In this document: positions 5,342 through 54,524 of the stretch, piece after piece
Numbering within the stretch: the first letter of the stretch is position 1
How the letters are laid out: each line of letters starts with the position of its first letter
Source: Malacoraja senta
Taxonomy: Eukaryota
Assembly (NCBI GenBank): GCA_038087875.1
Contig: JAXLNO010004157.1
Span: 62,001-126,000 of the forward strand
Direction: 5' to 3'
DNA length: 64,000 nucleotides
Program-made: the position numbers and the translations under genes
Notes under the pieces: model-generated
What the model was told of the DNA's origin: nothing
Databases searched by the model: none
Seen by the model: the letters and a program-made list of their open reading frames with translations, nothing else

Positions 5342-5510
5342 TGTGCTAACCAGTCAGTGGAAAGACAATACATGATTACAATCGAGCCATCCATAGTGTA
5401 CAGATATATGATAAAGGGAATAACGTGAATAACATTTGGTGCAAGATAATGGCAGTAAAGTCCGATTAAAGATTGCCCGAGGATCTCCAATGCAGGAGAC
5501 AGTAGTTCAA

Positions 5511-6665
5511 GAGATTAGGATACAAACTTAAATCACACGGTATTGGGGGTTCAGTATTGATGTGGATAGAGAACTGGCTGGCAAACAGGAAGCAAAGAGT
5601 AGGAGTAAACGGGTCATTTTCACAATGGCAGGCAGTGACTAGTGGGGTACCGCAAGGCTCAGTGCTGGGACCCCAGCTATTTACAATTTATATTAATGAT
5701 CTGGACGAGGGAATTGAAAGCAACATCTCCAAGTTTGCGGATGACACTAAGCTGGGGGGCAGTGTTAGCTGTGAGGAGGATGCTAGGAGACTGCAAGGTG
5801 ACTTGGATAGGCTGGGTGAGTGGGCAAATGTTTGGCAGATGCAGTATAATGTGGATAAATGTGAGGTTATCCACTTTGGTGGCAAAAACGGGAAGGCAGA
5901 CTATTATCTAAATGGTGGCCGATTAGGAAATGGGGAGGTGCAGCGAGACCTGGGTGTCATGGTACACCAGTCATTGAAAGTAGGCATGCAGGTGCAGCAG
6001 GCAGTGAAGAAAGCGAATGGTATGTTGGCCTTCATAGCAAGAGGATTTGAGTATAGGAGCAGCGAGGTTCTACTGCAGTTGTACAGGGTCTTGGTGAGAC
6101 CACACCTGGAGTATTGCGTACAGTTTTGGTCTCCAAATCTGAGGAAGGACATTATAGCCATAGAGGGAGTGCAGAGAAGGTTCACCAGACTGATTCCTGG
6201 GATGTCAGGACTTTCATATGAAGAAAGACTGGATAGACTTGGCTTATACTCGCTAGAATTTAGGAGATTGAGAGGGGATCTTATAGAAACGTACAAAATT
6301 CTTATGGGGTTGGACAGGCTAGATGCAGGAAGATTGTTCCCGATGTTGGGGAAGTCCAGGACAAGGGGTCACAGCTTAAGGATAAGGGGGAAATCCTTTA
6401 AGACCGAGATGAGGAAAAACTTTTTCACACAGAGAGTGGTGAATCTCTGGAACTCTCTGCCACAGAGGGTAGTTGAGGCCAGTTCATTGCCTATATTTAA
6501 GAGGGAGTTAGATGTGGCCCTTGTGGCTAAAGGGATCAGGGGGTATGGAGAGAAGGCAGGTACGGGATACTGAGTTGGATGATCAGCCATGATCATATTG
6601 AATGGCGGTGCAGGCTCGAAGGGCCGAATGGCCTACTCCTGCACCTATTTTCTATGTATCTATGT
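5511..6665 (+). mobile_element. Young 5'-truncated CR1 LINE
   Basis: Uninterrupted 338-aa ORF 5557-6573 with SGVPQGSVLGP and [10 protein letters not shown] motifs; 3'UTR ending ctatgtatctatgt. Confidence 0.92.
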
Positions 6666-8959: not shown

Positions 8960-9440
8960 AGAACATAGAACAGTACAGCACAATATAAGTCCCTTTGACC
9001 CACAATGTTTGTGCCGAACATGATGCCAAGACCAATTGTTATCTGCTTGCACATAATCCATATCCATTCATTCCCTGCATATACATGTGCCTATCTAAAA
9101 GTCTCTTAAATGCCACTATCATATCTGCTTCCACCACCACCCCGGCAGCACATTCCAGTCACTCGCCACCCTTGGCGTAAAACACTTGACCTGCACATCT
9201 TTTTTAAACTTTGCCACTCATTGTAAAGCTATACCTGCTCTTATTTGATATTTCCTTCCTGGGTAAAAAGTCTGATGGTCTACACTATCTGTACTCCTCC
9301 CAGTTTGATATATTACTGTCAGGTCTCCCCTCAATCCCCGACATTCCAGAGAAAACAATCCAAGTCTGTCCAACTTCTCCCTGTGGCTAATACCCCACTA
9401 ATCCAGACATCATTCCGGTAGACCTCCTCTGCTTCCCAAC
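8960..9440 (-). mobile_element. CR1 3' fragment overlapping the end of the MHC-like last exon
   Basis: Minus strand cagaggaggtctaccggaatgatgtctggattag...ttggacagacttggattgttttctctgg = CR1 QRRFTRMMPGL..LDRLGLFSL; (ttctatg)n tail near 8960. Confidence 0.75.
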
Positions 9441-9639
9441 GGAAGCTGGTTGTGCTTCATGGTCACTGCAGTCCTCTCCTGGTCTCTGCTGTTGTCAGCT
9501 GGTCCCTGTTCATTGAGAATTTTTCTCCTTTTCCTCTTCTTCCAGCAACCAATTCCAAGGATGATCCCCAGGAGAATAAGAGGAACGATTACAGCTCCAG
9601 TCACGATCCTAATCTTTATATCTTCTTTCGCTGCCCTCT
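9410..9639 (-). CDS. MHC class I-like connecting peptide, transmembrane and cytoplasmic exon
   Basis: Acceptor ctgccaacag|AG joins alpha3 in phase 1: ERAAKEDIKIRIVTGAVIVPLILLGIILGIGCWKKRKRRK...GGLPE*; hydrophobic helix plus basic stop-transfer. Confidence 0.75.
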
Positions 9640-10234: not shown

Positions 10235-13200
10235 TCAGTCCTCTTCCGAGTCCGGGGACAAGGTAAGAGAGTTAACCAGTTCAAAGAAAGGGTTCCATGT
10301 ATCTAGGAATGTCTTGGTAGAGCCTTTGAGAGAGAACCTAAGTTTTTCAAGTTTCAGATTGTAAAGCACCTCCTTAATCCAACGGGCGTGTGTCGGGGGA
10401 CAGGTGAGCCTCCAACTAAGCAAGATCAGTCTCCGGGCTAACAAGGTTGTAAAAGCTAGGACCCGTTTCACCGCAACAGAGAGGTTGGTATTGGGAGGGG
10501 TACCGAAAATGGCTGACATTGGATTTGGAAGAATAGTCTGGTCGTAAGCTCTGCTTATCAATTCAAAAGCACTCCTCCAAAAGGCTGCTAGCTTAGGGCA
10601 AGACCAAAACATGTGGCTATGGTTGGCAGGAGATTGACTACATCTGTTACAGGTGTCATTGACAGCTGGGTACATTCTAGCTAATCTTGCATTTGTATAG
10701 TGGACTTTGTAAAGGACTTTGCATTGGATTAGGCCATGACGAGCGCATATGGAAGAAGAGTGGATCAAATCCAAGGCAGAGTCCCATTGCTGGTCTGTTA
10801 ATTTCGTATTCAGCTCTCCCTCCCACGCAGCTTTTAATGAGGTATGAGGTTTCAATAAAACCGACCCTAGCAAATTATACAAAATAGAGATGCATTTCTT
10901 CCGATTGGGGTCTAAAGCTAAGATGATATCAGTCAGGGTTTCAGGAGGGCGATTTGGGAAGTAGGGAAATGTCTTCCTCACAAAATCCCTAATCTGGAAA
11001 AACCGAAAAAGGTGGGAGTTTGGGAGGTTGTAGTTAGACGAGAGCGCCGCGAAAGATGAGAAGATACCATCCTTATATAGGTTTTTAATACTACTGATGC
11101 CATTACTATGCCAGGTTTTAAATGCGTGGTCTATACTTGAAGGTTTAAAAATGTGATTTTTAAGCAGTGGGGTCAAGATGGAAGGACCCTGTAAACCGGT
11201 TTTTCCTAAATTGACTCCATATCTTGAGCGAAAGGGACACAATTGGGCCTGCAGCCACAGATGTTATAGAAAGGGGGAGTTGGGAGCATAGGACAGACCG
11301 CAATGGGAGACGTGAACTCGCCTTTTCCATATATACCCATATCGGTGGGTGCTCGCAATCATCATTCATCCAATACAGGAGTTTTTGCAAGTTAGCTGCC
11401 CAGTAGTATCGCCTAAAATCAGGGAGGGCCAAACCGCCATCACTCTTAGGCGACTGCAGTATCGCCTTTCGGATTCTGACCGGTTTGCTACCCCATAAGA
11501 ATTTAGATATTGTCCTTTCTAATTTGTCAAAAAAAGATTTGGTGATAAGTATGGGGACATGCTGGAAAAGATACAGGAATTTGGGTAGGACAACCATCTT
11601 AACCAGATTTATCCGGCCCACGAGGGATAGTGGTAAGACTGACCAGCGATCAAAATCTTTTTCGGCTTTCTCAACCAGAGGCAAAAAGTTTGTGCGGAAC
11701 ATATCAGATAAGGGTATTGTGATAAAAACGCCGAGATAGCGAAACCCATCCTCTGCCCTTTTGAATGAGGTTAAAGAGCGAGGGAGCTGCTTAGCCGGTA
11801 AGTTAATCGGTAGTAGTTCACTCTTTTGGTAGTTAAGTTTATAACCAGAATATGCACCAAACCGTTCTAAAATATTCATAATCACAGGGAGAGAACTGAC
11901 TGGGTTCGAGATGTACAGGAGCAGGTCATCCGCATACAATGAGACTTTATGAGTTGTGTCAAACCGTGTAATACCTTTAAAGCCCTTCTCTGCGCGTAAC
12001 CAGACCGCCAGGGGTTCTATCGCGACATCAAACAAGAGTGGAGATAACGGGCAACCCTGTCTGGTACCTCTCTGAAGTGTGAAGTGGGGCGACAGTATGT
12101 CGTTTGTTTGTACTGAAGCCACCGGGGATGAATATAATAGGCTCACCCAGAGAATAAAACTGTTACCGAGGACAAACCTATCCATCGCTTCATATAGGTA
12201 CCTCCACTCGACCCTGTCGAAGGCCTTTTCGGCATCGAGGGAGACCACCATCTCCGGGGTCTCATTACTCGAAGAGTGAATGATGTTAAGGAGACGCCTA
12301 GTATTATGGGAAGACTGTCGACCAGGTATAAACCCTGTTTGATCCAACGAGATAATAGAGGGCATCACTCGCTGAAGACGAAGCGCAAGGGCTTTAGAAA
12401 GGATTTTGAGGTCCACATTCAGGAGTGAGATTGGTCTATAGCTACCACAAAGCAGGGGATCTTTCTCCTTTTTAAGAATTAGGGAGATGGTAGCCCACGA
12501 CAAGGTGGGCGGTAGGCGACGATTTAAAAACGCCTCGTTGTACATGTCTCTCAGGACTGATGCAAGGAGGTCAGAGAAAGCTTTGTAATATTCTACAGAG
12601 AAGCCGTCAGGGCCGGGTGACTTTCCGCTTTGCAGCGATGTGATGGCTGCTTGGACCTCAGCTACAGTTATGGGACCACCCAAGTCTCTCATGGCTTCTT
12701 CGTCTATTCGGGGAAGCGTCATACTACTGAACATGTCACCTGCAGTGGGGGGACAGTCGGAAGTGTATAGTTCAGTGTAGAATTTAGCAAATGCTTCATT
12801 AATTCTGAGAGGATCAGTATGAGTCTCCCCTGAGCTGGATCTAATGGCTGGAATTAACCGTGAAGGCGCATCTGTTCTGGCCTGATGGGCCAAAAGCTTT
12901 TCAGCTTTATCCCCAGATTCAAAAAAGTATTTGCCTAGATTTAAGCAGTCGTAGTTTGGCTTTATTAATGGATATGAGGTCAAAGTCTGTTTGTAGCCTA
13001 AGGCGTTCTCTATAGAGATTAGGGTTTGGGTCAGATGCATATTTGTCATCAATGTCCTTTATTTTTTGTAACAGATCTGCCGTTTGGAACGTCTCCGTTC
13101 TTTTCAGGTTGGAGATAAAGGAAATGAGTTGGCCCCTAATATAGGCTTTTGAAGCTTCCCAAAGTATACCTCTTTCTATGTCCGGCGAGTCATTCAGCTC

Positions 13201-14025
13201 CAAATATAGGGTGATTTGGGAGTGCAAGAATTGCATGTAGTGAGCCTCTGCTAATAATGAGGAGTTGAACCTCCACTTAAAGGGGTTAGTTCGTTTACGA
13301 AAATGAAGATCAAGGGAGGTCGCAGCATGATCTGATATTACGATGCTATGGTACTCACTGGATTTGATTTTGGAAAGCAATCTATTATCTAAAAGAAAGA
13401 AGTCTATACGGGTAAACATACGATGTACGTGGGAGAAAAATGAAAATAATTTAGTCGTGGGGAATATAAATCTCCATGGATCTGTGAGCCCCAGTTGTTT
13501 GGCGAGAACATGCAGAGTCTTACCGGATTTAGTTAAAGTAGAGGCTTTATTCGAAGATCTATCCAGTATAGGATCTTGGACCAGATTAAAATCTCCACCC
13601 ACAATGACATGGTGATTTTCAATATTTGGGAGAGATGTAAAAAATTTAGTTATAAATGAGCTGTCATCCCAGTTGGGTCCATAAATGCATGCCAATATGA
13701 CAGGTGTGTCTTGCAATTTGCCCGACACCATGACAAAGCGACCAGCAGGGTCTTCCACAGTTTTCTGTGGTTCGAACTTAATGTTCTTACGAATCAGGAT
13801 AGCGGTGCCCCTGGCCCTATTATTAAATTTCGAGTGAAATAGTTGACTAATCCAGCCTCTCTTAAGCCGTGTTACCTCTCTGTTGCGAAGGTGGGTCTCT
13901 TGGATAAAGAATATATCGCCTTTGAGCTGTTGCAAATGGGCCAAGATCCTATCAGTTTTGGTAGGACTTCCCATCCCTCTCACGTTCCACGAGACAAATC
14001 TAAAAGTATCGTTTGTGTTGGCCAT
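10235..14025 (-). pseudogene. L1 ORF2 (APE endonuclease, RT, C-terminal Cys domain), two frameshifts
   Basis: SWNVRG and IVGGDFN (APE); KSPGPDGF, RQGCPLSPLLF, LYADD (RT); CNRC...HMFWSC; three overlapping ORFs. Confidence 0.92.
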
Positions 14026-15256
14026 TTTTAGCTATATGGGTAATGCGCTGTAGTTCTGCAAAACGAGACGGAAGAGCGCATCGAAGCCAGCTGCCGAGAG
14101 TGGGGATGTGGAGGGGGAGGGGGGGGGGGTGAATATATATATGTGAAGTAAAATAAAACAACAAAAAAAAAAAAAAAAAAAAAAAAACAAGAACAAAAAC
14201 ATACACACACGGCAAACAAGTGGAACACACATCATTTAACCATCTTTCAAACCTGAGTCTCCAGACCTGAGATCCCCCATGTCTCAACTGAACCTTAAGT
14301 GCCCCTTGCACCAAGGTGCGTTGTCCTCGCTTCCGCATGGAGATATCCGATCTTAACTCCCTATATCACAGCTTCCCAAAGCGATGGAGTCACTCAGTGT
14401 CGATAAGGTAACATGAAATAAAATAAGTATAGTAATAGTAATAATGACGGTGATGATAATAATTTGAAAAACAGAGTAGGAATAAAGTAAGATAAACATA
14501 CATTGGTAAATGCAAGGTTAAAATAATAGCCATAATGGTTGCACTGCCAGTACCATTGCTAACCCTTATAGTAATAATAGCAATGATGATAGTCACAATA
14601 AGACAAAGCCTATTAACAAAATGGTGATACTAAATAAACCGGCTAACGTGTAAGTGGAGCCAGAATAACTTCCTTTGGTGTTGCATAGTATGTCTTAAAA
14701 TCGACAAAGTATAAAGAGAGAGTTGGCGTTGGAAAAGTTAGCAAATTACAAACTGGGCTGTTGGATTAAAGCACAGCGCTAAAGGCATCAATTATGTTTT
14801 GTTAAACAAAAAAGGTATAAGATAAGATTTGTATAACACCGCCCTGGCTGTAATGAGCTCTTATCAGCCCCAGACAGTTCGTTATGAAGATTAGTATAAG
14901 CAAACTAGCCAGGTGCTGACAGCGTTAGCGGCCAGCTGCTAAGAACAGGAAGGCAGAGACCAAATCACAAACCACAAAGTGGGTCCCTTAAGCCCAGCTT
15001 TATAGCATATGCTGGTGAGGGACCCCTCAAGCACGATTATGCATAGACAATATAAGAAAAAGTTGATATAAAACATTCACAAATCCTGGTGATTCCTTAC
15101 CTGCCTCATACATTTCGAAACCGGGGTCTAGTATAATCAGCAATGCTGAACGCTAACCATAGCTAGTTATTAGGAACAGTCAAGCTAAAGTTAGTCCATG
15201 TAACCATAGGTTAACCGGGCCCCTGTGCCACTCGAATATAGACGTACTGAACGAAG

Positions 15257-16078
15257 TCAGTCATCTGTGGGTCCCGGTCTGCGTCGATGGTGAGATGAGA
15301 TGAAATCCCGAGCGTCCTCGGGAGATGTTAGTCGTCGCCTCTTTCCCTCCCCGGACATTATGAACAGCTTGGCTGGATAATGAAGGGAGGGTTTGAAACC
15401 CAGGTTATACAGCTCCTTCATAACGTCTCGGTACGCGAAGCGTTGTTCAACTATGTCGGGACAGTGGTCTTCGAAAATGTGGAACGGGGTATCTTTGTAT
15501 TTCAGCTTACCCCTCTGCCTCCGAGCCTCACGTACCACCAACTCACGGGTCTGGTATCTATGAAAGCAGATCACAACTGCTCTGGGTTTCTCACCAGGGC
15601 TTGGCTTGGCTGTTAGCGTACGGTGGGCTCGGTCTAGTTCCGGGGCTGATTCCAGTATGTGTTCGCCAAGAGTCTCGAGCAGAAGTTGAGAAAAAAACGC
15701 TGTTGTTTGGGAGCCCTCGATATTCTCGGGAAGACCCACTATCCTTACGTTATTTCGGCAACTCCTGCCTTCCAGGCTAATAAGCTTAGCCTTTACCTTG
15801 GCGTTCTCTTCGGTCACCGTAGTTAACATTAACGTTATAGCTCGTATATCTTGGCTAGTGGTAGCGGCAAAAGACTCTAATGATGAGAGACGGTGTTGGT
15901 GGTCTAACATAGTGGTCTGGATATTGTCCAGCTTCGTTTCCAATTTGGTGAACGCAGTGTTGAATTCTGCCAGTAACAATACCTTATGTTCTGTTAACAT
16001 GGCTGCTAGCGTGGCCATACTGGCGCTGGCCGCCGGGTCTTCTGTCTTTTGCTCCGCTTTCTTTCCTTTGTTTGGCAT
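15257..16078 (-). CDS. L1 ORF1p, intact 273 aa
   Basis: Coiled-coil then LEGRSCRNNVRIVGLPE, ELDRAHR, LHYPAKL motifs of L1 ORF1. Confidence 0.9.
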   Translation of the reverse strand: MPNKGKKAEQKTEDPAASASMATLAAMLTEHKVLLLAEFNTAFTKLETKLDNIQTTMLDHQHRLSSLESFAATTSQDIRAITLMLTTVTEENAKVKAKLISLEGRSCRNNVRIVGLPENIEGSQTTAFFSQLLLETLGEHILESAPELDRAHRTLTAKPSPGEKPRAVVICFHRYQTRELVVREARRQRGKLKYKDTPFHIFEDHCPDIVEQRFAYRDVMKELYNLGFKPSLHYPAKLFIMSGEGKRRRLTSPEDARDFISSHHRRRPGPTDD

Positions 16079-16582
16079 CTTTACAGCATAGAGAGGTACT
16101 CACAATGATGTTTAAATGTTTGTGGGTGGTTAAAAAACTTAGACTGAGCTGTAATAAAAGTTGGAGGTGAAAAGGTCGGGAGCGTGGAAAAGTGTGACTA
16201 CACCAGCATGTCGCCCCCACCGGAAGTCCTGTAATGATTTTATTATCTACATTAAACTAGCATTGTTCACATCTAAATAAAAATAACAAAGTCTTAGATT
16301 TATGTAATTGTCCAGACGATGGATGTTTAAATAGATCAATGAAAAATCTTTGAAGTTCATATTAGCGTTGAGATTTTATCTGCAGCATTTAATTATGAAT
16401 TTAAAGAATCAAGCATATGTCAGAAATAGATGACTATATGCAGTGTAGAGGTCAACAAGGCTATTTTCTTATGTTGACCATTGTTATTTTAGCAAATAAA
16501 AGTGAACCCACTTATAGTTGATAAAACTTCAAAGGTTTTAAACTTTGCTGATATTTCAATATCTGAGAGTTTGATATTCTCA

Positions 16583-18805: not shown

Positions 18806-18897
18806 TGCACAGTTTAGTTAAGAGTGTGTTGAGGCTGTTATCTCAGTCCAGGAGGTTTATTGTCTCAAGTGATCAGCCTCATTGACTTGCCACTTAC

Positions 18898-19173
18898 CCT
18901 GTGGAACATTGACTCCCTGCAGCAGAGTTGCATGTTCGATGTAACAGGAGAATTTTGCCACATCTTCTCTACTCAGTTGAATTGTATTCTTCAGCTGGTA
19001 AGTCCCATCCCAATTGGGCAACAGATCATCACTGGATTCAGACTCGTGGTCTCCCTCACCATCTCTCAGCCACGTTACATCGATGCCCCGTGGGTAGAAG
19101 CCTGTGACAAGGCAGGAGAGTCTCAGTGATTGTGACTCATCACGTTTAATCCCAATAAACACCTCAGGGGTTT
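18898..19173 (-). CDS. MHC class I-like alpha3 (Ig C1-set) exon, 276 nt
   Basis: ttgcag|AA...CAG G|gtaagt; ETPEV..LSCLVTGFYP..VTW..LPNWDGTYQL..FSCYIEH with both Ig cysteines. Confidence 0.93.
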
Positions 19174-20377: not shown

Positions 20378-20659
20378 CTCTCCTCTGTAGTGCTTCTTGT
20401 CCACACTCCAGATATATCAGCAGCCACTTCACACGGTCCTTCTCCAGGAGATCTTTGAAATACTTGTTCATGAAGGTGTTGATATTCCACCGATCTGCTA
20501 GCATCTGGAAATCTGGACGTAGTGCAATCCAGCGCATTCTGTCCTTGTCAAAAGCACAGGCATCCTCCCCATCATAACCCAGTCTGACAAACCCATCAGT
20601 GGAATTGTCACTGTCCACTTCACAGCCGCAGAAACCCTGCACAAAGAAAACAGCTGGGG
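20378..20659 (-). CDS. MHC class I-like alpha2 exon, 282 nt
   Basis: cctcag|CC...AGA G|gtatac; VQGFCGCEV..GYDGED..FDKDRMRW..DRWN..KWLLIYL..EALQRR. Confidence 0.92.
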
Positions 20660-21729
20660 CTGAGGTGGGGAATTTTGGTTGGGGAGAGTGGATGGAAGGG
20701 AGAGGCAATTTACAAATCAGTTCTCAGCATGGTACAAACAGGCATAACAGAACACAACATAGAGCTGTACAGCACAGGAGCAGGTTTACTTCAGAGGTTT
20801 ACTTCAGAGGTTTACTTCGGCCCACCGAGTCCGCACTGACCAGTGATCCCCGCATATTAACACTATCCCACACAGACTACTTTTCTTTCCAGCTTTCTCC
20901 ACTCTACCCCATCACTCTAAATGGTCCTGGTCTCATATGTTTTCTGTCCATTTTTCCACAGCATGCTGCCTGACTCATTGAGTTCCTCCTGTTTGTTTTT
21001 AATTCAGATTGGCAGCATCTGCAGTTTGCTGTGACTCCATCTTAGCACAATGGATGATCAGTGTGGATTCAGTGAGCAGAAGGGCCAGTTTCCATGCTGT
21101 GTGACGCAATGACTCAATGACCCATGGTTTATATACTGAGTGCATGGACTAACCTCAAGTGTTGAGGGGGGAAGCTTTACTGTTGCGGATGTAACACTAA
21201 AGGAGTTCTGCTATGTCAGAAGGGTAGAACTCAGATTTCTGCACTGTCGTACATAAAGAACAGAGGAAGGAGTGCATTGTCAGATGGGCAATGCTACAGA
21301 GCCAACAGGTCAGTCTGAAGGTTAAGGCAATGCAGATGGGAAGTACATCAAGGCTGTTGCACTGTGTGGGATTGCCACACCCTCTGTGGATTGTTGCCAA
21401 TATTGAGGGAATGCTGGATTAACAGAATATTATTGTTGAGGGAATACATCATAGTCACCATCAACCAGCTTAAATCAAGGTCCCATCTCTAGGTGATCAG
21501 GCTATAAGTAAACTAATGGTTTCTCCCTCATTCCAGCCCAATAAAACAGATGATCCAATCCATCCACTTATTACTGGTGTTGAATATCAAATGCTTAACC
21601 CATAAAGTGACTATCACCAGCCAACTGTTATCAATGGGTGTTCAGCAGTTAGGACACATTAAATATAGACGATGGGCCGTGTCTCTATCAAAATGTGATG
21701 GAGTAAATGTCTGAAACAGCATCAATGGT

Positions 21730-22340
21730 GCTGAAGTGAAAAAGGTTGAGAGCTTCTGTTTCACCTACTGCCTCAGGAGACTAAGGAAATGTGGCATCTC
21801 CAATGACTCTTACAAACTTCTACAAATGTGCCATAGAAAGCATACTGACAGGTTGCATCACAACTTAGTTTGGAAAGAGTTCTGCCCAAGACCGCTGGAA
21901 ATTGCAGAGAGGTGGAGATGTAGCACAGTCGATCACACAAACATGATTCCCCACCAGTGAATCCATCTATATTTCAACTGGCTCAGGAAAGCAGACAACA
22001 TAATCAAAGATTCATCCCGCTCTGGTCATTCCTTCTTCTTCCTGCAGAAGGTACGTAAGCATTAAAGCGTGCACCACCAGACTCAGTAACTGTTTCCTCC
22101 CCTATGTTATCAGGTTTCTGAACAGTCCTCCCTTATGCTAGGGTTCACCTCAATCCCATTGTAGACACTGGACTTTGTCTCTGGCACTGGTGCCTTACAA
22201 AGCTGAGAACTACATTCTGCACTCTTTGCTCTACCTATTGTACGAGTTTGGTTTGATTGTATTTATGAATAGTTTTCTTTGATGTGATTGACTAACATGC
22301 AAAAAAAGTGTATCAGAGAATCATGTGACAGCAACAAAAC
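21730..22340 (+). mobile_element. Rex1/Babar-like LINE 3' fragment, degraded
   Basis: CLRRLRKCG, then ttctacaaatgtgccatagaaagcatactgacaggttgcatc (FYKCAIESILTGCI); catgtgac tail. Confidence 0.65.
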
Positions 22341-22402
22341 TAAAACAAAATCCATCTGTGTCATCACTGAGTGTCTACCCCAGGTCCACTCACGACACTT
22401 AC

Positions 22403-22663
22403 TCGAGATACCATGTTGCTGTTGGTAGACTATCTCAGCATTTCCTCTGACAATCCCATGAAAACCTGCAACTGTGATGGCCATTGAATCCCAGTGATCC
22501 TGCGGGAAAGACTGGGCCATCCATCGCTGTCTGGCAACAGCCCGCTCTAGTGTGCTGTCAAAATATGCTATCTGGAGGTCATCCAGCATTGCTACCATAC
22601 TGTACTCAGGCAGCACACTCAATCCATGGTTCAACAGGTAGTAAAATGCAAGATGGTGAAAAT
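22403..22663 (-). CDS. MHC class I-like alpha1 exon, 261 nt
   Basis: ttgcag|AT...TCG A|gtaagt; DFHHLAFYY..LPEYSMVAMLDDLQIAYFDS..RQRWM..DHWD. Confidence 0.9.
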
Positions 22664-27414: not shown

Positions 27415-27844
27415 ATTATATTTACTGTCATCTGATAACAATGGGATTAAACTTTCAGGACGAGTAGGTTTGTAATCTCCAAGCCTTGACGATTGTCAGA
27501 ACAGTTAGAAAGGAAGCATTGTGTGGGAAGAAATTGCTCATCAGATTCCCATTAAATCTTCCCCCCCCCCCTCAATTTAAACCTATGTCTTCTGGTTCTC
27601 GATTCTGTAATCTGTTGAATATGTTGCCCACATGAACATTTCCAGATTGAGATTGATATATTTTTGTTCATTAAGGGTGTAATGGGTTAGAGCTGAGCCA
27701 CAATGTCTGTGCCGAACATGATGTGAAGTTAAACTAAACTCTTCATGCTTGTACATGATTCATATCCCTCAAGTCCCTACATATCCACGTGCCTATCCTC
27801 AAGCTTCTTAAATCTCATTATCGTCTTCTGGGGAAGTCGTGGAT

Positions 27845-30702
27845 AGAGCATGGATTGACACCTGGAAGTATGATGTTGTGGCGATCAGTGAAACATGGTT
27901 GCAGGAGGGCTGTGATTGGAAACTAAATATTCCAGGATTTCGTTGCTTCAGGGGTGATAGAATTGGAGGGGCAAGAGATGGGGGTGTTGCATTGCTTGTC
28001 AAGGAAGATATTACAGCAGTGCTTTGGCAGGATAGAGTAGAGGGCTCGTCTAGGGAGGTTATTTGGGTGGAACTGAGAAATGGGAAAGGTGTAGCAACAC
28101 GTATAGGGGTGTATTATAGACCACCAAAGGGGAGCGAGAATTGGAAGAGCAAATATGTAACGAGATAGCAGATATTAGTAGTAAGCACAAGGTAGTGATT
28201 GTGGGAGATTTCAATTTTCCACACTTAGACTGGGAAACACATTCTGTAAAAGGGCTGGATGGTTTGGAGTTGTAAAATGTGTGCAGGATAGTTGTTTGCA
28301 GCAATACATAGAGGTACCTACTAAAGAAGGGGCAGTGCTGGACCTCCTGTTAGGAAATGAGACAGGGCAGGTGGCGGAGGTAGGCGTTGGGGAGCACTTC
28401 GGGTCCAGTGATCACAATACCATTAGTTTCAATATAATTATGGAGAGGGTCAGAACTGGACCTAGGGTTAAGATTTTTGTTTGGAGAAAGGCTAACTTTG
28501 AGGAGATGCGAAAGGATTTAAAAGGAGTGAATTGGGACATGTTGTTTTATGGGAAGGATGTAGTAGAGAAATGGAGGTCATTTAAAGGTGACATTTTAAG
28601 AGTACAGAATCTTTATGTCCCTGTGCGGTTGAAAGGAAATAGTAAAAATTGGAAAGAACCATGGTTTTCAAGGGAAATTGGACAATTGGTTCGGAAAAAG
28701 AGAGACATCTACAATAATTATAGGCACCATGGAGTAAATGAGGTGCTTGAGGAGTATAAAGAATGTAAAAAGAATATTAAGAAATAAATTAGAAAAGCTA
28801 AAAGAAGATATGAGGTTGCTTTGGCAAGTAAGGTGAAAGTAAATCCAAAGGGTTTCTACAGCTATATTAATAGCAAAATGATAACAAGGAATAAAATCGG
28901 TCCATTAGAGAGTCAGGGTGGACAGCTATCTGCAGAGCCAAAAGAGATGGGGGAGATATTGAACAATTTCTTTTCGTCGGTATTCACCAAGGAGAAGGAT
29001 ATGGAATTATGTGAGCTAAGGGAAACAAGCAGAGTAGCAATGGAAACTATGAGATTCAAAGAAGAGGAGGTGCGGACACTTTTGAAAAAATATGAAAATG
29101 TATAAGTCTCCAGGTCCTGACAGGATATTTTCTAGGACAGTGAGGGAAGTTAGTGTAGAAATAGCAGGGGCTATGACAGAAATATTTCAAATGTCATTAG
29201 AAACGGGAATAGTGCCGGAGGATTGGCGTACAGCGCATGTTGTTCAAAAAGGGTTGTGAGAGTAAACCTAGCTATTATAGACCTGTTAGTTTGACGTCAG
29301 TGGTGGGCAAATTAATGGAAAGGATGCTTAGAGATAATATATATGAGCATCTGGATAAGCAGGGTCTGATTAGGAACAGTCAACATGGATTTGTGCCTGG
29401 AATGTCATGTTTGACTAATCTTCTTGAATTTTTCGAAGAGGTTACTAGGGAAATTGATGAGGGTAAAGCAGTGGATGTTGTCTATATGGACTTCAGTAAA
29501 GCCTTTGACAATGTTCCTCATGGAAGGTTGGTTAAGAAGATTCAATTGTTGGGTATTAATGGTGGAGTAGCAAGATGGATTCAAGAGTGGCTGAATGGGA
29601 GATGCCAGAGAGTAATGGTGGATGGCTGTTTGTCAGGTTGGAGGCCGGTGACCAGTGGGGTGCCTCAGGGGTCTGTGTTGGGTCTACTGTTGTTTGTCAT
29701 GTACATCAATGATCTGGATGATGGTGTGGAAAATTGGATTAGTAAGTATGCAGATGATACTAAGATAGGTGGTGTTGTGGATAATCAAGTAGATTTTCAA
29801 AGTCTACAGAGAGATTTAGGCCATTTGGAAGAGTGGGCTGAAAGATGGCAGATGGAGTTTAATGCTGATAAAGGTGAGGTGCTACATCTCGCCAGGACAA
29901 ATCAAAATAGGACATACATGGTAAATGGTAGCGAATTGAGGAATGCAGTTGAACAGAGGGATCTAGGAATAACTGTGCATAGTTCCCTGAAGGTGGAATC
30001 TCATGTAGATAGGGTGGTAAGAAAGTTTTTGGTTTGCTGGCCTTTATAAATCAGAGCATTGAATATTGAATTTGGGATGTAATGTTAAAATTGTACAAGG
30101 CATTGGTGAGGCCAATTCTGGAGTATGGAGTACAATTTTGGTCGCCTAATTATAGGAAGGATGTCAACAAAATAGAGAGAGTACAGAGGAGATTTACTAG
30201 AATGTTGCCTGGGTTTCAACAACTAAGTTACAGAGAAGGGTTGAACAAGTTAGGTCTTTATTCTTTGGAGCGCAGAATGTTAAGGGGGGGCTTGATAGAG
30301 GTCTTTAAAATGATGAGCGGGTTAGACAGAGTTGACGTGGATAAGCTTTTCCCATTGAGAGTAGGGAAGATTCAAACAAGGGGACATGACTTGAGAATTA
30401 AGGGACAGAAGTTTAGGGGGAACATTAGGGGGAACTTCTTTACTCAGAGAGTGGTAGCTGTGTGGAATGAGCTTCCAGTGGAAGTGGTGGAGGCAGGTTC
30501 GATTTTATCCTTTAAAAATAGATTGGATGGGTATATGGACGAGAAAGGAATGGAAGGATATGGTCTGAGTGCAGGTAGATGGGACTAGGGGGAAGTAAGA
30601 AGAAAGAAGGGGGAAGAAAAAAAAAGTGTTCGGCACGGACTTGAAGGGCCGAGATGGCCTCTTTCCGTGCTGTAATGGTTATATGGTTATATGGTTATAT
30701 GG
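27845..30702 (+). mobile_element. CR1 LINE, most of ORF2 (APE and RT), frameshifted, (GTTATATG)n tail
   Basis: VVAISETWL, GVYYRPP, GDFNFP, YRPVSLTS, SGVPQGSVLG, KYADDTK in successive ORFs. Confidence 0.93.
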
Positions 30703-31434: not shown

Positions 31435-32159
31435 TGAAGGACTGAAGGACCTGCTCCTATGCTGTATTGTCCTATGTTCTATGTTCATTATTTCCCTGTA
31501 TTCAGTTCCTCTGTTCAATGGATTGCCAAGGTAACCATAGTATATATAACTTCCCACAGGAGCTTTTACAACTCAGGAATGACCGTTACCCAAAATTATT
31601 AATACATTCAATTCAATCATTCAATTAATACATCCAAGACAATGTACCCAGGGCAAACACAGGTACTGTGCAACAGTAAATAGAATCAGTTTTGTTGTTT
31701 CCTCAAAGTTCACAAGTAGAAGGAGCATTGTTTACCAGAGGAGACAGTGGCCACACCGTAAGTGTTGAGTAAGGTAAAAAGAAGCATGTTTAACAGCCGC
31801 CCACAACAATATTTAACCAGCAGAGTAAATGCAGCAACAGTAACTTAATCTCTTGCACTTTTTTAACAGAACTCTGGTGTGAAGCTAATTATTGGTCCAT
31901 GTATACACAAACCTGATAACTAGATCCAATGGGAATGAGACCACTTGTTCTGGTCACTAATTGCCAGTGAATACAGTTTCAGGATCAGGTTTTATGGTAG
32001 GGATTATATTGGTGTTTTAAGGACAACAATTACAAAATCATATTTCACATAGCATCTTACAACCGAATAGATGTTTCTCAAAGTATAACTATTTTACAAT
32101 TCAGAATGCAGTCAATTCCACAAACTGCAGTTTTAGATAAACCAGATAGTCTACTTTCC

Positions 32160-46769: not shown

Positions 46770-47370
46770 GGTTTTTTATTTTTGAATTTATTTTATTAGA
46801 AGCGATTGTACAAGGATAAGGCAATCGACATAACACTTCTACAATTATTGTACAGCTTCATTTTTAACGTTAGAACCTAAATCGAAAAAAATGAGAGAAA
46901 AAAGAAAAGAATGACGAAAGAGAAGTAAAATAAGAACAAGCTAGAAAATAGACCCTAAGGTTCCAAAGAAGTGCAAGAGAAAAGAAAAGAAATAAGAAAA
47001 AAAAAGATGGAAATATACCTGCCCCCTCACCTATCCCTGGCATCAGGTTTAAATTTGTGTTTAACCATTCTGTTGTTGCAGAAATTCAGTAAAAGGGAAC
47101 CATGTCTTAAGAAATTGATCTGCTTTTCCCGCCAAGACAAGCCCAATATTTTCCAAATGTAGTGTATCGGACTCATCAGTAATCCACATCTTCACTGTAG
47201 GGACTGTTATCTGTTTCCAGAATTTGAGTATTAATTTTTTCCCCGTTATGAGGCCATAGTTGAGGAAACGTCTTTGGAATATCGTTAATTTAGAGCAGGC
47301 ATCTGACATACCTAAAGTGATCCGTTTTATATCTGGTTCCAATTTAATGTTAAGTATTTTGGAGAAGATA
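46770..47370 (-). mobile_element. Short L1 3' fragment related to the 41539-43547 family
   Basis: YGLITGKKLILKFWK..TVKMWI versus YSIITGKKLILKFWK..TIKMWI; T-rich tail at ~46770. Confidence 0.8.
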
Positions 47371-47880
47371 GCCATTGGAGAGGTCGCAGAGGGAGGAGCT
47401 ACACCCGAGCGGTAGGACTTAAAAAGGAGCGCAGGGCTTGTTGCTTACAGAGGCCCGAGAGCTGTTGGAGAGGTCGCAGAGGGAGGAGCTACACCCGAGC
47501 GGTAGGACTTAAAAAGGAGCGCGGGGCTTGTTGCTTACAGAGGCCCGAGAGCCGTTGGAGAGGTCGCAGAAGGAGGAGCTACACACGACCGGTAGGACTT
47601 AAAAAGGAGCGCGGGGCTTGTTCCTTACAGAGGCCCAAAGAGCGTGGAGAGGTCGCAGAGGGAGGAGCTACACACGACCGGTAGGAGTTAAAAAGGAGCG
47701 CGGGGCTTGTTCCTTACAGAGGCCCAAAGAGCCGTTGGAGAGGTCGCAGAGGGAGGAGCTACACACGACCGGTAGGAGATAAAAAGGAGCGCGGGGCTTG
47801 TTCCTTACAGAGGCCCAAAGAGCCGTTGGAGAGGTCGCAGAGGGAGGAGCTACACCCGAGCGGTAGGAGATAAAAAGGAA
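47371..47880 (+). repeat. Tandem array, ~5.6 x 90 bp, GC-rich
   Basis: ttggagaggtcgcagagggaggagctacac recurs at ~90-bp spacing. Confidence 0.9.
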
Positions 47881-48019
47881 CCGAAATCTGTAACGTTCCA
47901 AGTTCCACTTCAAAAACAAGTGGGCTTGAGGAAGCCGCTGATTGGTGGACGCAGACAAGAGGGAGCAGCTGATTGGGAGTCAGATCCCTGCTGATTGTAC
48001 TGTATTGTAGCAGTTTGTT

Positions 48020-48595
48020 TTTGTATTGTATCCAGGGTAAGGGGAGTATGAGGGCCAGGGCAGTTTGTTGTTCTGGATGTCAGATGTATTGGTATCCAGG
48101 GTAAGGGGAGTATGAGGGAGAATGAGGGCAGTTTACTGTTCTGGATGTCAGATGTATTGTATCCAGGGTAAGGGGAGTATGAGGGCCAGGGCAGTTTGTT
48201 GTTCTGGATGTCAGATGTATTGTATCCAGGGTAAGGGGAGTATGAGGGCCAGGGCAGTTTACTGTTCCGGATGTCAGATGTATTGTATCCAGGGTAAGGG
48301 GAGTATGAGGGCCAGGGCAGTTTGTTGTTCTGGATGTCAGATGTATTGTATCCAGGGTAAGGGGAGTATGAGGGCCAGGGCAGTTTACTGTTCCGGATGT
48401 CAGATGTATTGTATCCAGGGTAAGGGGAGTATGAGGGCCAGGGCAGTGTGTTGTTCTGGATGTCAGATGTATTGTATCCAGGGTAAGGGGAGTATGAGGG
48501 CCAGGGCAGTTTGTTGTTCTGGATGTCAGATGTATTGTATCCAGGGTAAGGGGATTATGAGGGCCAGGGCAGTTTGTTGTTCTGGATGTCAGATG
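48020..48595 (+). repeat. Tandem array, ~9 x 63 bp, containing the CR1 ORF1 start
   Basis: Unit encodes MRARAV(C/Y)CSGCQMYCIQGKGS. Confidence 0.9.
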
Positions 48596-48893
48596 TGGGA
48601 AGTCATGGAGTCTGATAGCCCTCCAGACGTCCACATCTGCGCCAGGTGTATCGAGATGGGGCTCCTAATGGACCGTATTAGGAACCTGGAGCAGCAGCTC
48701 GATGACCTCCGTCTGGTCAGGGAGAGCGAGGAAGTCATTGAGAGGAGTTACAGGGATGTGGTCACTCCAACACCACAGGAGGCAGGCAAGTGGATCACGG
48801 TTGGGAGAGGCAAGGGGCACAGGCAGGGACTAGAGAGTACCCCGGTGGCTGTACACCTTGACAATAAGTACTCCTGTTTGAGCACTGTTGGGG
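48557..48893 (+). mobile_element. CR1 ORF1 N-terminal fragment (CxxC...CxxC zinc finger and coiled coil), 3'-truncated
   Basis: CSGCQMWE..HICARC..LEQQLDDLRLVRE..LDNKYSCL, recognised as CR1 ORF1-type. Confidence 0.75.
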
Positions 48894-49017
48894 TGGCATG
48901 ATTGATTATTCTCGTTCCGAGTCAATCAATGCAGTGAGAAGCCGGGATTGATCTACGGCATGAAATCACAAAGCTTTAAAATCTTCACGTAGTCACTCAC
49001 ATGACTCCGAAGTAAAA

Positions 49018-49700: not shown

Positions 49701-50097
49701 GTGGGAGGAGCGCGTGGATTAGGTCCCAGCATGGTCAGACCACGTGGTGTGAGAGTCTGCAGCGTGGAGACTCCAGGCCCGGTAAGACTCTGGTAAGGTG
49801 ACGGCTGCAGCCCACTGGTGGGCGGTGGAGTGGCCAGGGCTGGTCGAGGCCCACGGGGAGTGGAATGGCACGCGGGCGAAGTGCCGGTCAGCGGATGAAC
49901 GGGAAGGCAGCGAGGGGCGGCGGTGTCGATGAGTCGGTGAAGGTCGGCGGCAACGGCCACGGGTGAGGCCGCGCGGGGAGGTCGACGACAGCGGCATCCT
50001 TGGTGGTCCAGGACCGAGATAGGTCAGGGAGGCGGTGAGTGTTAGTGCTTCTCCTCGTGGCAGCAATGTTGTCGCGGGGCTGTTAGTTCCGCCTGTC

Positions 50098-50480
50098 CCT
50101 TACTCCCCCAAGCTGGCTACCTCCCATCCCCTTACTCCCCCAAGCTGGCTACCTCCCATCCCCTTACTCCCCCAAGCTGGCTACCTCCCATCCCCTTACT
50201 ACCCCAAGCTGACTACCTCCCATCCATCCCCCTTACTCCCCCAAGTTGGCTACCTCCCATCCCCTTACTCCCCCAAGCTGGCTACCTCCCATTCCCATTA
50301 TTCCCCCAAGCTGGCTACCTCCCTTTCACCTTACTCCCCCTAGCTGGCTACCTCCGATTCCCCTTACTCCCCGAACCTGGCAACTTCCCATCCCCCTTAC
50401 TCCCCCAAGCTGGCCTGGCTCCCATTCCCCTTGCTCCCCCAAGCTGGCTACCTCTCCCATCCACCTTACTCCCCCAAGCT
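50098..50480. repeat. Minisatellite, ~12 x 32 bp (tactcccccaagctggctacctcccatcccct)
   Basis: Directly visible. Confidence 0.9.
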
Positions 50481-50689
50481 GGCCTGGCTCCCACCGCACT
50501 GTCACGGGCTGTGGGCCGGCAGCGCACATACACACACACACACGGAGCGGGGCCGCGGCTTCGGGCAGCGGACACACGGGGCCATAAACCCGGCAACATC
50601 CCCGTCAGCTGCAGCAGAGTTGGGGACAGACTGGTCCCTGCACCCACCCAGCGTCACTGACCATGCTGCACCGGCACCACGACCTCCCT

Positions 50690-51560
50690 ACCAGGGTGAT
50701 TCACCCCCCCGACCCACGCACCGGGGTGATTCACCCCCCCAGCCCCATATGGGGTGATTCACCCCCCACCCCCCGACCCACACACTGGAGTGATTCACCC
50801 CCGACCCGACCCACACACCGTGGTGATTCACCCTTCCCGGACCCCCACATGGGGTGATTCACCCCCCGGACCCCCATAATGGGGTAATTCACCCCCCAAC
50901 CTCACACAGCGGTGATTCACCCCCCCCCCGACCCACACAATGGAGTGATTCAACCCCCCCCCCCGACCCACACATTGGAGTGATTCAACCCCCCCCCCAC
51001 CGACCCACACACTGGAGTGATTCATCCCCCTCCCCGACCCACACACTGGAGTGATTCACCCCCCCGACCCCGACACCATGGGGATTCACACCCCCCGAAC
51101 CTTAGACAGTGCTTATTCACCCCTCCCCCGACCCACACACTGGAGTGATTCACCCCCGACCCGACCCACACACCATGGTGATTCACCCCCCCCCCGATCC
51201 TCACACAGTGGTGATTCACCCCCCCCCCGACCCACACACTGGAGTGATTCACCCCCCCCCCGAACCCCACACCATGGCGATTCACCCTCCCCCCGAACCT
51301 CACACAGTGCTGATTCACCCCCCCGACCCACACACTGGAGTGATTCACCCCCGACCCGACCCACACACCGTGGTGATTCACCCTTCCCGGACCCCCACAT
51401 GGGGTGATTCACCCCCCCACCCCCCGGACCCCCATAATGGGGTGATTCACTCCCCCCACCGGACCCCCACATGGGGTGATTCACCCCCACACCCCCAGAC
51501 ACCCACAATGGGGTGCTTCACCCCCCCCCACCCCCCGGACCCCCACAATGGGGTGATTTA
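50690..51560. repeat. C-rich minisatellite, ~31-32 bp unit (ggagtgattcacccccc..gacccacacact), roughly 27 copies
   Basis: Directly visible; gtgattca recurs. Confidence 0.9.
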
Positions 51561-52401
51561 CCAGGGTGCCGGGCTGCCTGTCGCCCTGCTGCCGCCAAAC
51601 ACCAAACGATATTGCCAAGTGCAGGAACTATCTTTGAAGTAGTGGGGAGGTGTCCGACTGCCCTATGGCGACAAATATGCATGGAGGCGAGAATAATTTC
51701 TTGTCATTTCTGGAGATGGTTGGCATTTTCTTTCATTATTGATAGTGCAACATTAATTCTGAAGAATTCCAAAGAGCACAGTTGTCAAAGTTCGTCTCTT
51801 AAAGAAAGCAGACAGCAACAAAATTGTTAAGGGTAAACCAAAGCAATATTTTAATAAATTTGCCAGGGGGGAGTTGCGAGATCTATAAAGAGCACACACG
51901 TTGCTCAGTGCTTCTTGGGCTCCACTCAAAGAACAAAGGAAAGTTAATTATACATTTTCTTATCAAAAAAACACACCTAAATCTGAGTGAAAGATCCGTA
52001 GCCTAAGGGAAACAAGGGAGGCTGGACCCATATATTTGCAATGTCAGCCTTATTCTCAAATCTAGGCACAGCTTCAGTACAGCTGCCCATTCCGGAAGGA
52101 CAACTAACTCCATTTTGTTTTCAAATGACTTCCATCTTGGTTCCAGAATGGGCATCCGTCTGTGAACTAAAACAAGCTTGTAAGACTTGGATGAAAGCCA
52201 CTACCTTGTCCTTAGCTGGGACAGGCAGTTCAGACACATATCTAATATGGTGCTGTGCCCAGACAATACATCTCTATGTTAATACATTGTCAATACATTG
52301 TTTCAATGATTAGTAGAAACCAAGCTTCTAAGATTTCCATAACTTTATTCTACTGGGAAAATTCTCTTTTAAATTTGACTGCTTTCTGTTTTTCAGCAAA
52401 T

Positions 52402-53974
52402 TTAAAAGTAACGGTGTGCAAGCAGGCTGGAGGAGCGGGCAAAGGCATTGCCACAGAGCGGGTAGGTGAAGGGGTGCTGACCGGTGTGGACTCGCCGGTG
52501 CTCCAGCAGGTGGTCAAGTCGGGTGAAGCCCTTTCCACAGGACGGGCAGGGGAAGGGACGCACACCGCTGTGGGTACGCCGGTGCTGCCACAGGCTGGAC
52601 ATGCTGGTGAAACCCTTGCCACACTCAGCGCACACATAGGGTGTCTCTCCGGTGTGTATCCGCTGGTGCTCCCGCAGCCCCCGTGCTCTCTTGTTACAGT
52701 GGGAGCAGCTGCTCGCCGGCGTGGGTCCGCTGGTGCTGCCGCAACCCCCGCGAGCTGTCAAACTCCTCACCGCAGTACGGGCAGTCGTAGGGCTGGCCAC
52801 TTTTGTGCACGCGCTGGTAAGACAGGGGGTGGGAGGCAATGGCAAAGCGCTCTCCACACACCGGGCTGGGGATGGGACCGTCGCCGGCGTGCACCCGCTG
52901 GTGGGACAGATGATAGGTGGAGCGGGTGAAGCCCTTGCCGCACTGGGTGCAGGTGTAGGGGCGCTCACCAGTGTGGGTGCGCTGATGGAACAGCAGGTGA
53001 CCGGACTGGGTGAAGCCCTTGCCGCACTGGGCGCAGGTGTAGGGGCGCTCGCCGGTGTGGGTGCACTGGTGGGATAGCAGGGTGCAGGAGCGGGTGAAGC
53101 CCTTGCCGCACTGGGTACAGGTGTAGGGGCGCTCGCCGGTGTGGGTGCGCTGGTGGGACAGCAGGTTGCCAGACTGGATGAAGCCCTTGCCGCACTGGGT
53201 ACAGGTGTAGGGGGCGCTCGCCGGTGTGGGTGCGCTGGTGCACCTGCAGGCTTCTGGAGTGAGTGAAGCCCTTGCCACACTGGGCGCAGGTGTAGGGACG
53301 CTCGCCGGTGTGGGTGCGTTGGTGCACCAGCAGGATGCTGGAGTGGGTGAAGCCTTTGCCGCACTGGGTGCAGGTGTAGGGGCGCTCGCCTGTGTGGGAG
53401 CGCTGGTGGGACAGCAGGTTGCTGGAGGAGTTGAAGCCCTTACCGCACTGGGCGCAGGTATAGGGGTGCTCGCCAGTGTGGGAGCGCTGGTGGGACAGCA
53501 GGTTGCTGGAGCGGGTGAAGCCCTTGCCGCAGTCGCTGCAGGTGTAGGGGCGCTCGCCAGTGTAGGTGCGCTGGTGGGACAGCAGGTTGCTGGAGCGGGT
53601 GAAGACCTTGCCGCAGTCGCTGCAGGTGTAGGGTCGTTCCCCGGTGTGCAGGCGCCTGTGCATCTTCAGTTCCGGCGGCGACTTGAAGCTCTTGCCGCAG
53701 TCGGAGCAGTCGAAGGGGCGTTCTCCCGTGTGAACCCGCCGGTGGATCTCCAGCCGGCTCGGGTACTGCCAGGCCTTGCCACACACGTCGCACTCATAAC
53801 GCTTCTCCTTGTTGTGCCCCCTCATGTGGTCCTCCATCAAAGCGCAGCCCCTCGAAGCTCAGCCCGCACACCGAGCAGATGGGGGGTGGGGGGGAGGGGC
53901 TCATCTGCACCCTGGCCGCCCTCAATGGCCGCTCACGTCCCCGTCTCTCCGTCCACAGCAACGGCTCCTAAACC
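52402..53974 (-). pseudogene. C2H2 zinc-finger array terminal exon, copy 1 (about 15-17 finger units, frameshifted)
   Basis: Acceptor cctcctgcag| at 53974; repeated HTGERPYTCxxCGKGF; frame changes near 53840, 53212 and 52690. Confidence 0.85.
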
Positions 53975-54524
53975 CTGCAGGAGGGGAACACAGAGGGTCA
54001 ACAAGCTGGCAAACAGGACATTACTAGGACATATTGGGTGCATTTATGGCGGAGGAAACCGTTATATAATTCTGCGCGGCACAGTGGCGCAGCGGTACAG
54101 TTGCCGCCTCACTGCCAGAGGACGGGGCTCGATCCTGACTACGGGTGCTGTCTGTGCGGAGTTTGTACGTTCTCCCCTTGACCTGCGTGGGTTTTTACTC
54201 CGGGTGCTTCAGTTTCCTCCAACATTTCAAAGACGTTCATGGTTGTAGATTAATCGGCCTCCGCAAAATTGTTAAATTGTCCCTAATGTGCGTAGGATAG
54301 TGCTAGTGTACGGATGAAAGCCACTACCTTGTCCTTAGCTGGGACAGGCAGTTCAGACACATATCTAATATGGTGCTGTGCCCAGACAATACATCTCTAT
54401 GTTAATACATTGTCAATACATTGTTTCAATGATTAGTAGAAACCAAGCTTCTAAGATTTCCATAACTTTATTCTACTGGGAAAATTCTCTTTTAAATTTG
54501 ACTGCTTTCTGTTTTTCAGCAAAT

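Follow-up and report, generated by a model that had tools for sequence, protein, structure and literature searches.

To which branch of the class I major histocompatibility complex (MHC) family does a molecule belong that has lost most of the residues holding peptide termini, and what would its groove bind in their place? This question is raised by a gene of the skate Malacoraja senta, located in a 64,000-nucleotide stretch of DNA (GenBank assembly GCA_038087875.1, contig JAXLNO010004157.1, positions 62,001 to 126,000 of the forward strand) that is referred to here as the window. The gene lies on the minus strand, spans approximately 22.4 kb and consists of five exons with 364 uninterrupted codons and GT-AG boundaries at all introns. 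It encodes a type I membrane protein of 364 residues, comprising a signal peptide, alpha1 and alpha2 domains, an immunoglobulin (Ig)-like alpha3 domain, a transmembrane helix, and a cytoplasmic tail. We favor, with a probability of about 0.6, the reading that this is an intact gene of a lineage sister to the nonclassical class I lineage UGA, and that the ligand bound by its product would be conserved, hydrophobic, and lipid-like, not a set of varied peptides.

Phylogenetic position of the lineage

The alpha2 exon was queried with phmmer against 1.8 billion representative proteins. Its best match was protein P0001 of Leucoraja erinacea (95% identity); among the matches listed, the others were at most 43% identical, except for a fragment of a partial Leucoraja paralogue (P0014, 89%). 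The alpha1 exon shares 94% amino acid identity with P0001 and 68-70% with sharks. When P0001 itself was used as the query, one protein cluster per species was recovered at 54-72% identity, covering six ray genera and many shark genera, and below these orthologues the identity dropped sharply to 36% or less. The orthologue genera are Leucoraja, Pristis, Mobula, Hypanus, Hemitrygon, Pristiophorus, Heptranchias, Scyliorhinus, Stegostoma, Hemiscyllium, Chiloscyllium, Mustelus, Cetorhinus, and Carcharodon. The motifs of the lineage (FHxLAFYY, AGFHG, CGCE..DNST, FMNKYF, and EKDCVKW) are all present in the window protein, the last one with its cysteine changed to arginine.

In maximum-likelihood trees, the lineage including the window gene formed one clade with support of 100/100. 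UGA formed another (100/100), and the two were joined at 94/84. The window gene was placed beside Leucoraja within the rays, and the division between rays and sharks was mirrored both inside the lineage and inside UGA. Since rays and sharks separate inside the clade, the gene is older than the ray/shark split. CD1 was represented in these trees by mammalian CD1b only, on a very long branch. The earlier note on this DNA, made from its letters, had named nesting within a well-described lineage as the outcome that would deprive the gene of novelty; the trees, which ran without reference UDA and UCA sequences, returned a separate clade outside UGA. A chimaera orthologue was not found among the matches, those from Callorhinchus being 32-33% identical and forming a clade of their own. 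Chimaeras are also said to possess UDA, and the missing orthologue would argue against UDA in this comparison of sequences. The lineage is old, present in rays and sharks, sister to UGA, and distinct from UFA, the UAA-like classical genes, and CD1.

Between skate and sharks, identity amounts to 68-75% in alpha1/alpha2 and to 52-60% in alpha3. In classical class I molecules the conservation of these domains is reversed, and in MR1 and CD1d alpha1/alpha2 are better conserved than alpha3. The better conservation of alpha1/alpha2 across the species compared thus points away from the high polymorphism of classical molecules.

Members of the lineage and of UGA were found on contigs or chromosomes of identical size, taken as the same record, in Heptranchias (530 kb), Pristis, Stegostoma, Cetorhinus, and Mustelus. 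In Heptranchias perlo, eleven near-identical predicted proteins of the lineage (P0155 and P0234-P0243) are encoded on at least seven unplaced contigs, which could represent haplotigs or a local expansion. In addition, two cypriniform class I-like proteins, P0229 from Garra rufa and P0230 from Paramisgurnus dabryanus, stood on a long branch beside the clade of UGA and its sister lineage, with weak support (74/85). Either long-branch attraction or a remote relative among teleosts could explain this placement.

Residues of the groove

Residues are given in HLA-A2 numbering; this numbering was first assigned manually by means of conserved motifs, and the residues were then taken from a 105-sequence MAFFT alignment. 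Every item of the substitution list drawn up in the earlier note (F7, H59, Q84, A123, L143, R146, and L159, with W147 and Y171 kept) matches this alignment. The missing sequon at N86, also remarked on there, is explained by a histidine at position 86, and the sequon that it had spotted in alpha2 (DNST) corresponds to N107-S-T, the only one of the ectodomain. The apolar strand and helix strings that it quoted were all found in the translation. It did not mention the replacement of Cys164 by arginine in the window copy, which is treated below.

Two of the eight positions that anchor peptide termini (Y7, Y59, Y/R84, T143, K146, W147, Y159, and Y171) are identical in the window protein, namely, W147 and Y171. 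The residues F7, H59, Q84, A123, L143, R146, and L159 are invariant or nearly so in the 16 ray and shark orthologues. Given this near-invariance, the groove pattern is far beyond chance, and the features define a lineage of rays and sharks instead of being peculiar to the window gene.

Scored at 44 positions lining the groove of classical molecules, apolar residues make up a fraction of 0.73 for the window copy and 0.75 for the lineage, compared to 0.62 for UGA and 0.58 for UAA-like classical sequences; CD1b reaches 0.63, with a less reliable alignment. Charged residues occupy 7% of the groove positions in the window copy versus 20% in the UAA-like classical sequences. By this measure, a sequence proxy for a hydrophobic cavity, the groove of the lineage is the most apolar of all groups compared. 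Its floor carries small or apolar residues at G97, C99, V/I114, L116, and A123, and its helices carry apolar residues at M63, F70, I/L73, V/I74, M152, Y155, F156, and L159, where the window copy has V114, I73, and V74.

Comparison with other class I lineages

The nearest solved relative is PDB entry 9ch4, titled "Crystal structure of shark nonclassical MHC CLASS I, UGA" (phmmer E value of 3e-60, 39% identity). UGA and the window lineage are 37-40% identical in alpha1/alpha2, are both present in sharks and rays, and have in common Y9, Y22, T66, G69, F70, I/L73, I/V74, G76, Q84, G97, L116, A123, M152, Y155, F156, L159, and D163. In contrast to UGA, the window lineage has H59 (Tyr in UGA), L143 (Phe), R146 (Lys), and W167 (Leu), as well as C99, which is conserved in all 16 orthologues and is Phe in 17 of 17 UGA sequences. 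It has also lost the sequon at N86 and acquired N107-S-T, besides having the higher apolar fraction given above. The two lineages differ in their cytoplasmic tails as well: the tail of the window protein is free of tyrosine, whereas most of the UGA tails printed (10 of 13; UGA proteins P0253-P0263) have a YxxPhi motif at their end (YNAV, YNVI, YNTV, YQTI, YENI, and YESI). Among the 10 orthologue tails printed for the window lineage, that of S. canicula alone fits the motif (YLQA), and two rays have NYSK, without a hydrophobic fourth residue.

Identity as UFA was considered and rejected. PDB entry 8gm8, titled UFA, is 32% identical to the orthologue (115 bits, E value of 2.8e-32). Both MR1 and classical class I of fish give stronger matches, so that UFA is excluded as the identity of the window gene. 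Like UFA, which is described as CD1-like, it is an elasmobranch nonclassical (MHC-Ib) gene with the same overall fold. CD1 family membership by sequence was likewise rejected. The Pfam cutoff for MHC_I (PF00129) was 28.3 bits, and CD1 membership was taken as an MHC_I_3 (PF16497) score both higher than 35 bits and above that of MHC_I. The orthologues scored 92-98 bits on MHC_I versus 29-35.1 bits on MHC_I_3, in contrast to CD1b with 228 bits on MHC_I_3 versus 16.6 bits on MHC_I; the window alpha2 exon scored 16.7 bits on MHC_I_3. The molecule resembles CD1 in its apolar groove without peptide anchors and in being, probably, of the nonpolymorphic type with conserved ligand-binding domains. It differs from CD1b in sequence (14-25% identity) and in its tail without YxxPhi, a sorting motif that is present in CD1b, CD1c, and CD1d and not in CD1a.

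MR1, a presenter of non-peptide ligands with strong conservation between species, provides the next-best solved relatives by sequence (E values of 1e-37 to 5e-47). However, the identity is approximately 30%, and R9, Y62-type aromatic or charged positions, as read from a single aligned sequence with the MR1 motif, are apolar here. The NCBI name "MR1-like" is automatic, and orthology to MR1 is not supported. With the classical UAA (PDB 6lup), the window gene has in common the five-exon layout, the domain order, and the fold (structural Z score of 27.0), unlike the sequence, which is 18-35% identical in alpha1/alpha2 to the UAA-like protein P0206 (matching 6lup with an E value of 2e-94). In three UAA-like sequences, Y7, R84, W147, Y159, Y171, and N86 were invariant and positions 59, 143, and 146 varied.

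A further group of shark class I sequences, named "F10 alpha chain-like" (P0164-P0224; 55 sequences, multicopy, in sharks only), has Val101 and Leu/Phe164 and consequently no alpha2 disulfide. Its groove is rich in tryptophan (W97, W152, and W156). In all probability this group corresponds to the UEA lineage of the literature.

The proposal of the earlier note, a lipid or non-peptide binder of either a CD1-like or an unnamed lineage, is supported in part. The gene belongs to a sister lineage of UGA, with which its groove residues are mostly common; it is neither a member of the CD1 family by sequence nor UFA.

CD1-like MHC-Ib lineages of elasmobranchs are already on record, UFA having been announced as such by Verissimo et al. 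in 2023 (PMC10751288). What is specific to this locus is the complete five-exon model and the C164R change. A published name for the lineage was not found: the orthologues carry only the automatic NCBI name "MHC class I-related gene protein-like," the supplements of Verissimo et al. label genes only as "MHC-Ib," and no paper citing 9CH4 or 8GM8 was found.

Predicted structure

As a stand-in for the window protein, to which it is 91% identical, residues 1-283 of Leucoraja P0001 were modeled with AlphaFold2 from a 67-row alignment. The modeled protein carries a 12-residue retained-intron insert. The model displays the standard platform-plus-Ig fold, with a mean predicted local distance difference test (pLDDT) score of 88.6. 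Its closest structural match was UGA (9ch4, Z score of 27.9), and classical class I molecules, MR1, and chicken YF1 were at Z scores of 26-27. Among cluster representatives, chicken CD1-1 was second best (25.8), with ZAG at 25.3, human CD1d at 23.2, and UFA at 21.8. These differences are too small for a function to be assigned from the fold.

Proposed ligand and mechanism

The nearly invariant groove, the stronger conservation of alpha1/alpha2 than of alpha3, and the systematic replacement of residues by small or apolar ones together suggest a conserved non-peptide ligand. For the related lineages, a 2025 review citing a personal communication places both UFA and UGA among CD1-like molecules and reports that lipid binding is suggested by structure and by mass spectrometry (PMC12562908). 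Homology and chemistry combined favor a surface molecule associated with beta2-microglobulin and bearing a lipid-like ligand.

In the mechanism that we propose, the protein would pair with beta2-microglobulin, and its groove would hold a conserved hydrophobic, lipid-like ligand instead of varied peptides. The five floor residues from G97 to A123 and the eight helix residues from M63 to L159 named above, in the form found in the window copy, could together form a deep, greasy cavity. Once at the cell surface, the molecule would present this ligand to a T-cell receptor of semi-invariant type or to a natural killer (NK)-type receptor, much as CD1d or MR1 do. The tail without YxxPhi, unlike that of UGA, suggests a different loading compartment, and loading in the secretory or an early recycling route would be likelier than in late endosomes.

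Two other uses of the groove were weighed against this mechanism. The first is unconventional peptide or lipopeptide binding, in which hydrophobic peptides would be held without terminal anchoring or would be N-acylated, as in chicken YF1*7.1. This would be consistent with W147, Y171, R146, and F7, which are kept or conservatively replaced, with an overall sequence that resembles CD1 less than it does class I and MR1, and with the presence of chicken YF1.7*1 holding an N-acylated glycine among the close structural matches (Z scores of 26.5-26.6). However, six of the eight terminus anchors are gone, including Y59, Y84, T143, and Y159, charged residues are scarce, and the groove is monomorphic between species, unlike the grooves of peptide presenters. 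We consider peptide binding of this kind very improbable.

The second is that no ligand is presented at all. The apolar groove would then be structural, and the molecule would be a ligand of NK-type or other receptors or a carrier, comparable to MIC/ULBP, HFE, FcRn, or ZAG. The Z scores of ZAG with a fatty acid (25.3), HFE (25.1), and FcRn (24.1) are indeed similar to those of presenting molecules, and a tail without an endosomal sorting motif is what such a molecule might have. Nevertheless, the near-invariance sits on inward-pointing groove positions across the whole shark-ray divergence, and the domain conservation, higher in alpha1/alpha2 than in alpha3, also speaks against a non-presenting molecule. 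The small floor residues point to a cavity rather than a collapsed groove, and UGA, its sister lineage, reportedly holds lipid (PMC12562908). Taken together, a role without a ligand appears improbable, and the presentation of a conserved lipid-like ligand is the reading carried forward here.

State of the window copy

Codon 164 bears on whether the window gene itself is a working member of the lineage. This codon is TGT in the Leucoraja locus L001 and the Heptranchias locus L002 and TGA in the Leucoraja paralogue L003, and arginine at this position is unique to the window copy among 17 lineage sequences. In a rival reading, the lineage is functional, and the window gene, as part of an expansion specific to skates, would have been disabled recently or be decaying toward a pseudogene through C164R.

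Several observations weigh against an intact gene with a lipid-like ligand. C164R abolishes the alpha2 disulfide between Cys101 and Cys164, which is kept by 16 of 16 orthologues and by nearly all class I molecules, and owing to this change the window copy may fold poorly or be becoming a pseudogene. The coding sequence differs from that of Leucoraja by 18 synonymous and 33 nonsynonymous substitutions, and the resulting ratio of nonsynonymous to synonymous rates (dN/dS) of 0.50, calculated from just 51 substitutions, indicates weak constraint. Skates also carry extra copies, some of them dead, and the window copy need not be the working one. The second Leucoraja copy, L003 (L003 positions 11722-14217; Leucoraja erinacea contig JAMYXN010000412.1), has its stop at the very same codon 164, and no alpha1, leader, or transmembrane exon was detected within 10 kb of it; with the TGA codon and the missing alpha1 exon, L003 looks like a dead paralogue. 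Public read runs were searched through an index, in which the best word share with the window was 0.48. In one RNA run from a related species, of which approximately 6% was read, zero reads fell on the exons and only repeats were matched, which is uninformative. Lastly, the lipid claim for UGA and UFA goes back to the personal communication in the review and to PDB titles.

Other observations oppose the decay of the window gene. The 364-codon reading frame and all splice sites are intact, although the window copy and Leucoraja have diverged by approximately 8% at synonymous sites and 10% in introns, and the frame is intact in both species. Compared to the colinear L001, the alpha1/alpha2 exons are 96% identical and the alpha3 and transmembrane exons 92%, with introns at approximately 90%, so that alpha1/alpha2 are better conserved than the introns. 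The 15 non-skate orthologues have 105 invariant positions in common; the window copy differs at six of these, with four changes found in Leucoraja too and only two private: C164R and a Val-to-Asp change at mature position 221 in alpha3. In a DNA contig of a relative that spans codon 164, no difference at this codon was among those listed, a weak hint that the relative shares G at position 20435 and that R164 is no assembly error but may be fixed. Moreover, the large shark group that is probably UEA lacks both cysteines, which suggests that losing the disulfide is not necessarily fatal. On balance, we hold decay of the window copy to be unlikely, if far from negligible, and retain the reading of an intact gene whose product would bind a lipid-like ligand.

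Gene structure and other features of the window

The coordinates of the gene and its surroundings are compiled in Table 1. The region singled out in the earlier note is bounded exactly by two exons: on the minus strand, the alpha1 exon starts with the base at position 22663, and the alpha2 exon ends with that at position 20378. The order of one domain per exon and the phase-1 introns are colinear with Leucoraja L001 and Heptranchias L002. For the leader, a scan of minus-strand ATG-to-GT candidates gave a single clear match (score of 55) to the leaders of shark orthologues; the leader splices in frame to alpha1, and its protein sequence is identical in Leucoraja L001. The cysteine pair of the alpha3 Ig domain, at mature positions 200 and 256, is intact. 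The last coding exon was located by tblastn with the orthologous proteins P0001 and P0151.

Introns 1 (9 kb) and 4 (9.3 kb) are enlarged by long interspersed nuclear elements (LINEs). The element in intron 4 lies in sense orientation just upstream of the acceptor of the transmembrane exon, and intron 1 holds an antisense fragment. If the alpha3 donor were skipped, translation would continue for 13 more codons to a TAA that lies within an AATAAA hexamer, which could allow a secreted form. The read-through frame and the stop are retained in Leucoraja L001, where the hexamer reads CATAAA. Elsewhere in the window, a tandem duplication contains one C2H2 zinc-finger open reading frame (ORF) per copy and is followed by a gap, and two long tandem repeats rich in proline, serine, and threonine are free of stops in multiple frames of both strands.

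Table 1. Features of the class I gene and of the remaining window (positions within the window)
Feature	Positions	Strand	Description
Leader exon (coding part)	31736..31787	-	ATG and 17 signal-peptide codons; phase-1 GT donor
Alpha1 exon	22403..22663	-	261 nt, 87 codons, phase 1; AG acceptor and GT donor; Pfam MHC_I 21.5 bits
Alpha2 exon	20378..20653	-	276 nt, 92 codons, phase 1; AG acceptor and GT donor; Pfam MHC_I 53.2 bits
C99-G-C101 motif	20622..20630	-	Extra floor cysteine C99 beside disulfide Cys101
N107-S-T sequon	20598..20606	-	Sole ectodomain N-glycosylation sequon; kept across the lineage
Codon 164 (HLA-A2 numbering)	20433..20435	-	CGT (Arg); Cys in all 16 orthologues; partner of Cys101
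Alpha3 exon, C1-set Ig domain	18898..19173	-	92 codons; Pfam C1-set 54 bits
Alpha3 read-through	18856-18898	-	13 codons to TAA; possible secreted form
Last coding exon	9410..9639	-	Connecting peptide, transmembrane helix, basic stop-transfer, tail of ~40 residues without tyrosine, TGA stop
LINE in intron 1	27812-30585	+	Antisense fragment
Reverse-transcriptase ORF in intron 1	29213-30046		RVT_1 108 bits
LINE in intron 4	10238-16099	-	Sense strand
ORF in intron-4 LINE	15260-16099		280 codons, upstream; no Pfam match
Endonuclease ORF in intron-4 LINE	12922-14031
Reverse-transcriptase ORF in intron-4 LINE	11163-13058
Further reverse-transcriptase fragment	5506-6570
Proline/serine/threonine-rich repeat	~47300-48900	both	Open in several frames
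Proline/serine/threonine-rich repeat	50000-51640	both	Open in several frames
Tandem duplication	~52246-56490		Period ~2123 bp
Zinc-finger ORF, one copy	52968-53858	-	297 codons, C2H2
Zinc-finger ORF, other copy	55091-55981	-	297 codons, C2H2
Gap	56785-56991		207 N

Implications for nonclassical class I evolution

The lineage bears on whether lipids or small molecules were already presented by proteins of the class I kind in the earliest jawed vertebrates; UFA and UGA have only recently been proposed as CD1-like. Another old lineage would imply that, ahead of the split between sharks and rays, several non-peptide presenters existed side by side. What the locus itself contributes is a naturally occurring loss of a disulfide, along with evidence that copies have been gained and are decaying in skates. 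The lineage as a whole is strongly conserved, with a greasier groove and a different trafficking tail, and offers a concrete protein for expression and ligand elution.

A bolder reading, which we regard as doubtful on present evidence, is that the sister lineage of UGA is a third, undescribed elasmobranch class I lineage presenting lipids or small hydrophobic ligands. Its groove is both the most apolar and the most conserved among the groups compared. C99 could then tether or sense the ligand, the lineage would have its own compartment, ligand, and innate-like T cells, and its copies in skates would have been duplicated and lost via hits at the disulfide codon. If true, the lineage, having no endosomal sorting signal, would sample a compartment and a ligand other than those of UGA and UFA and could serve innate-like T cells of its own.

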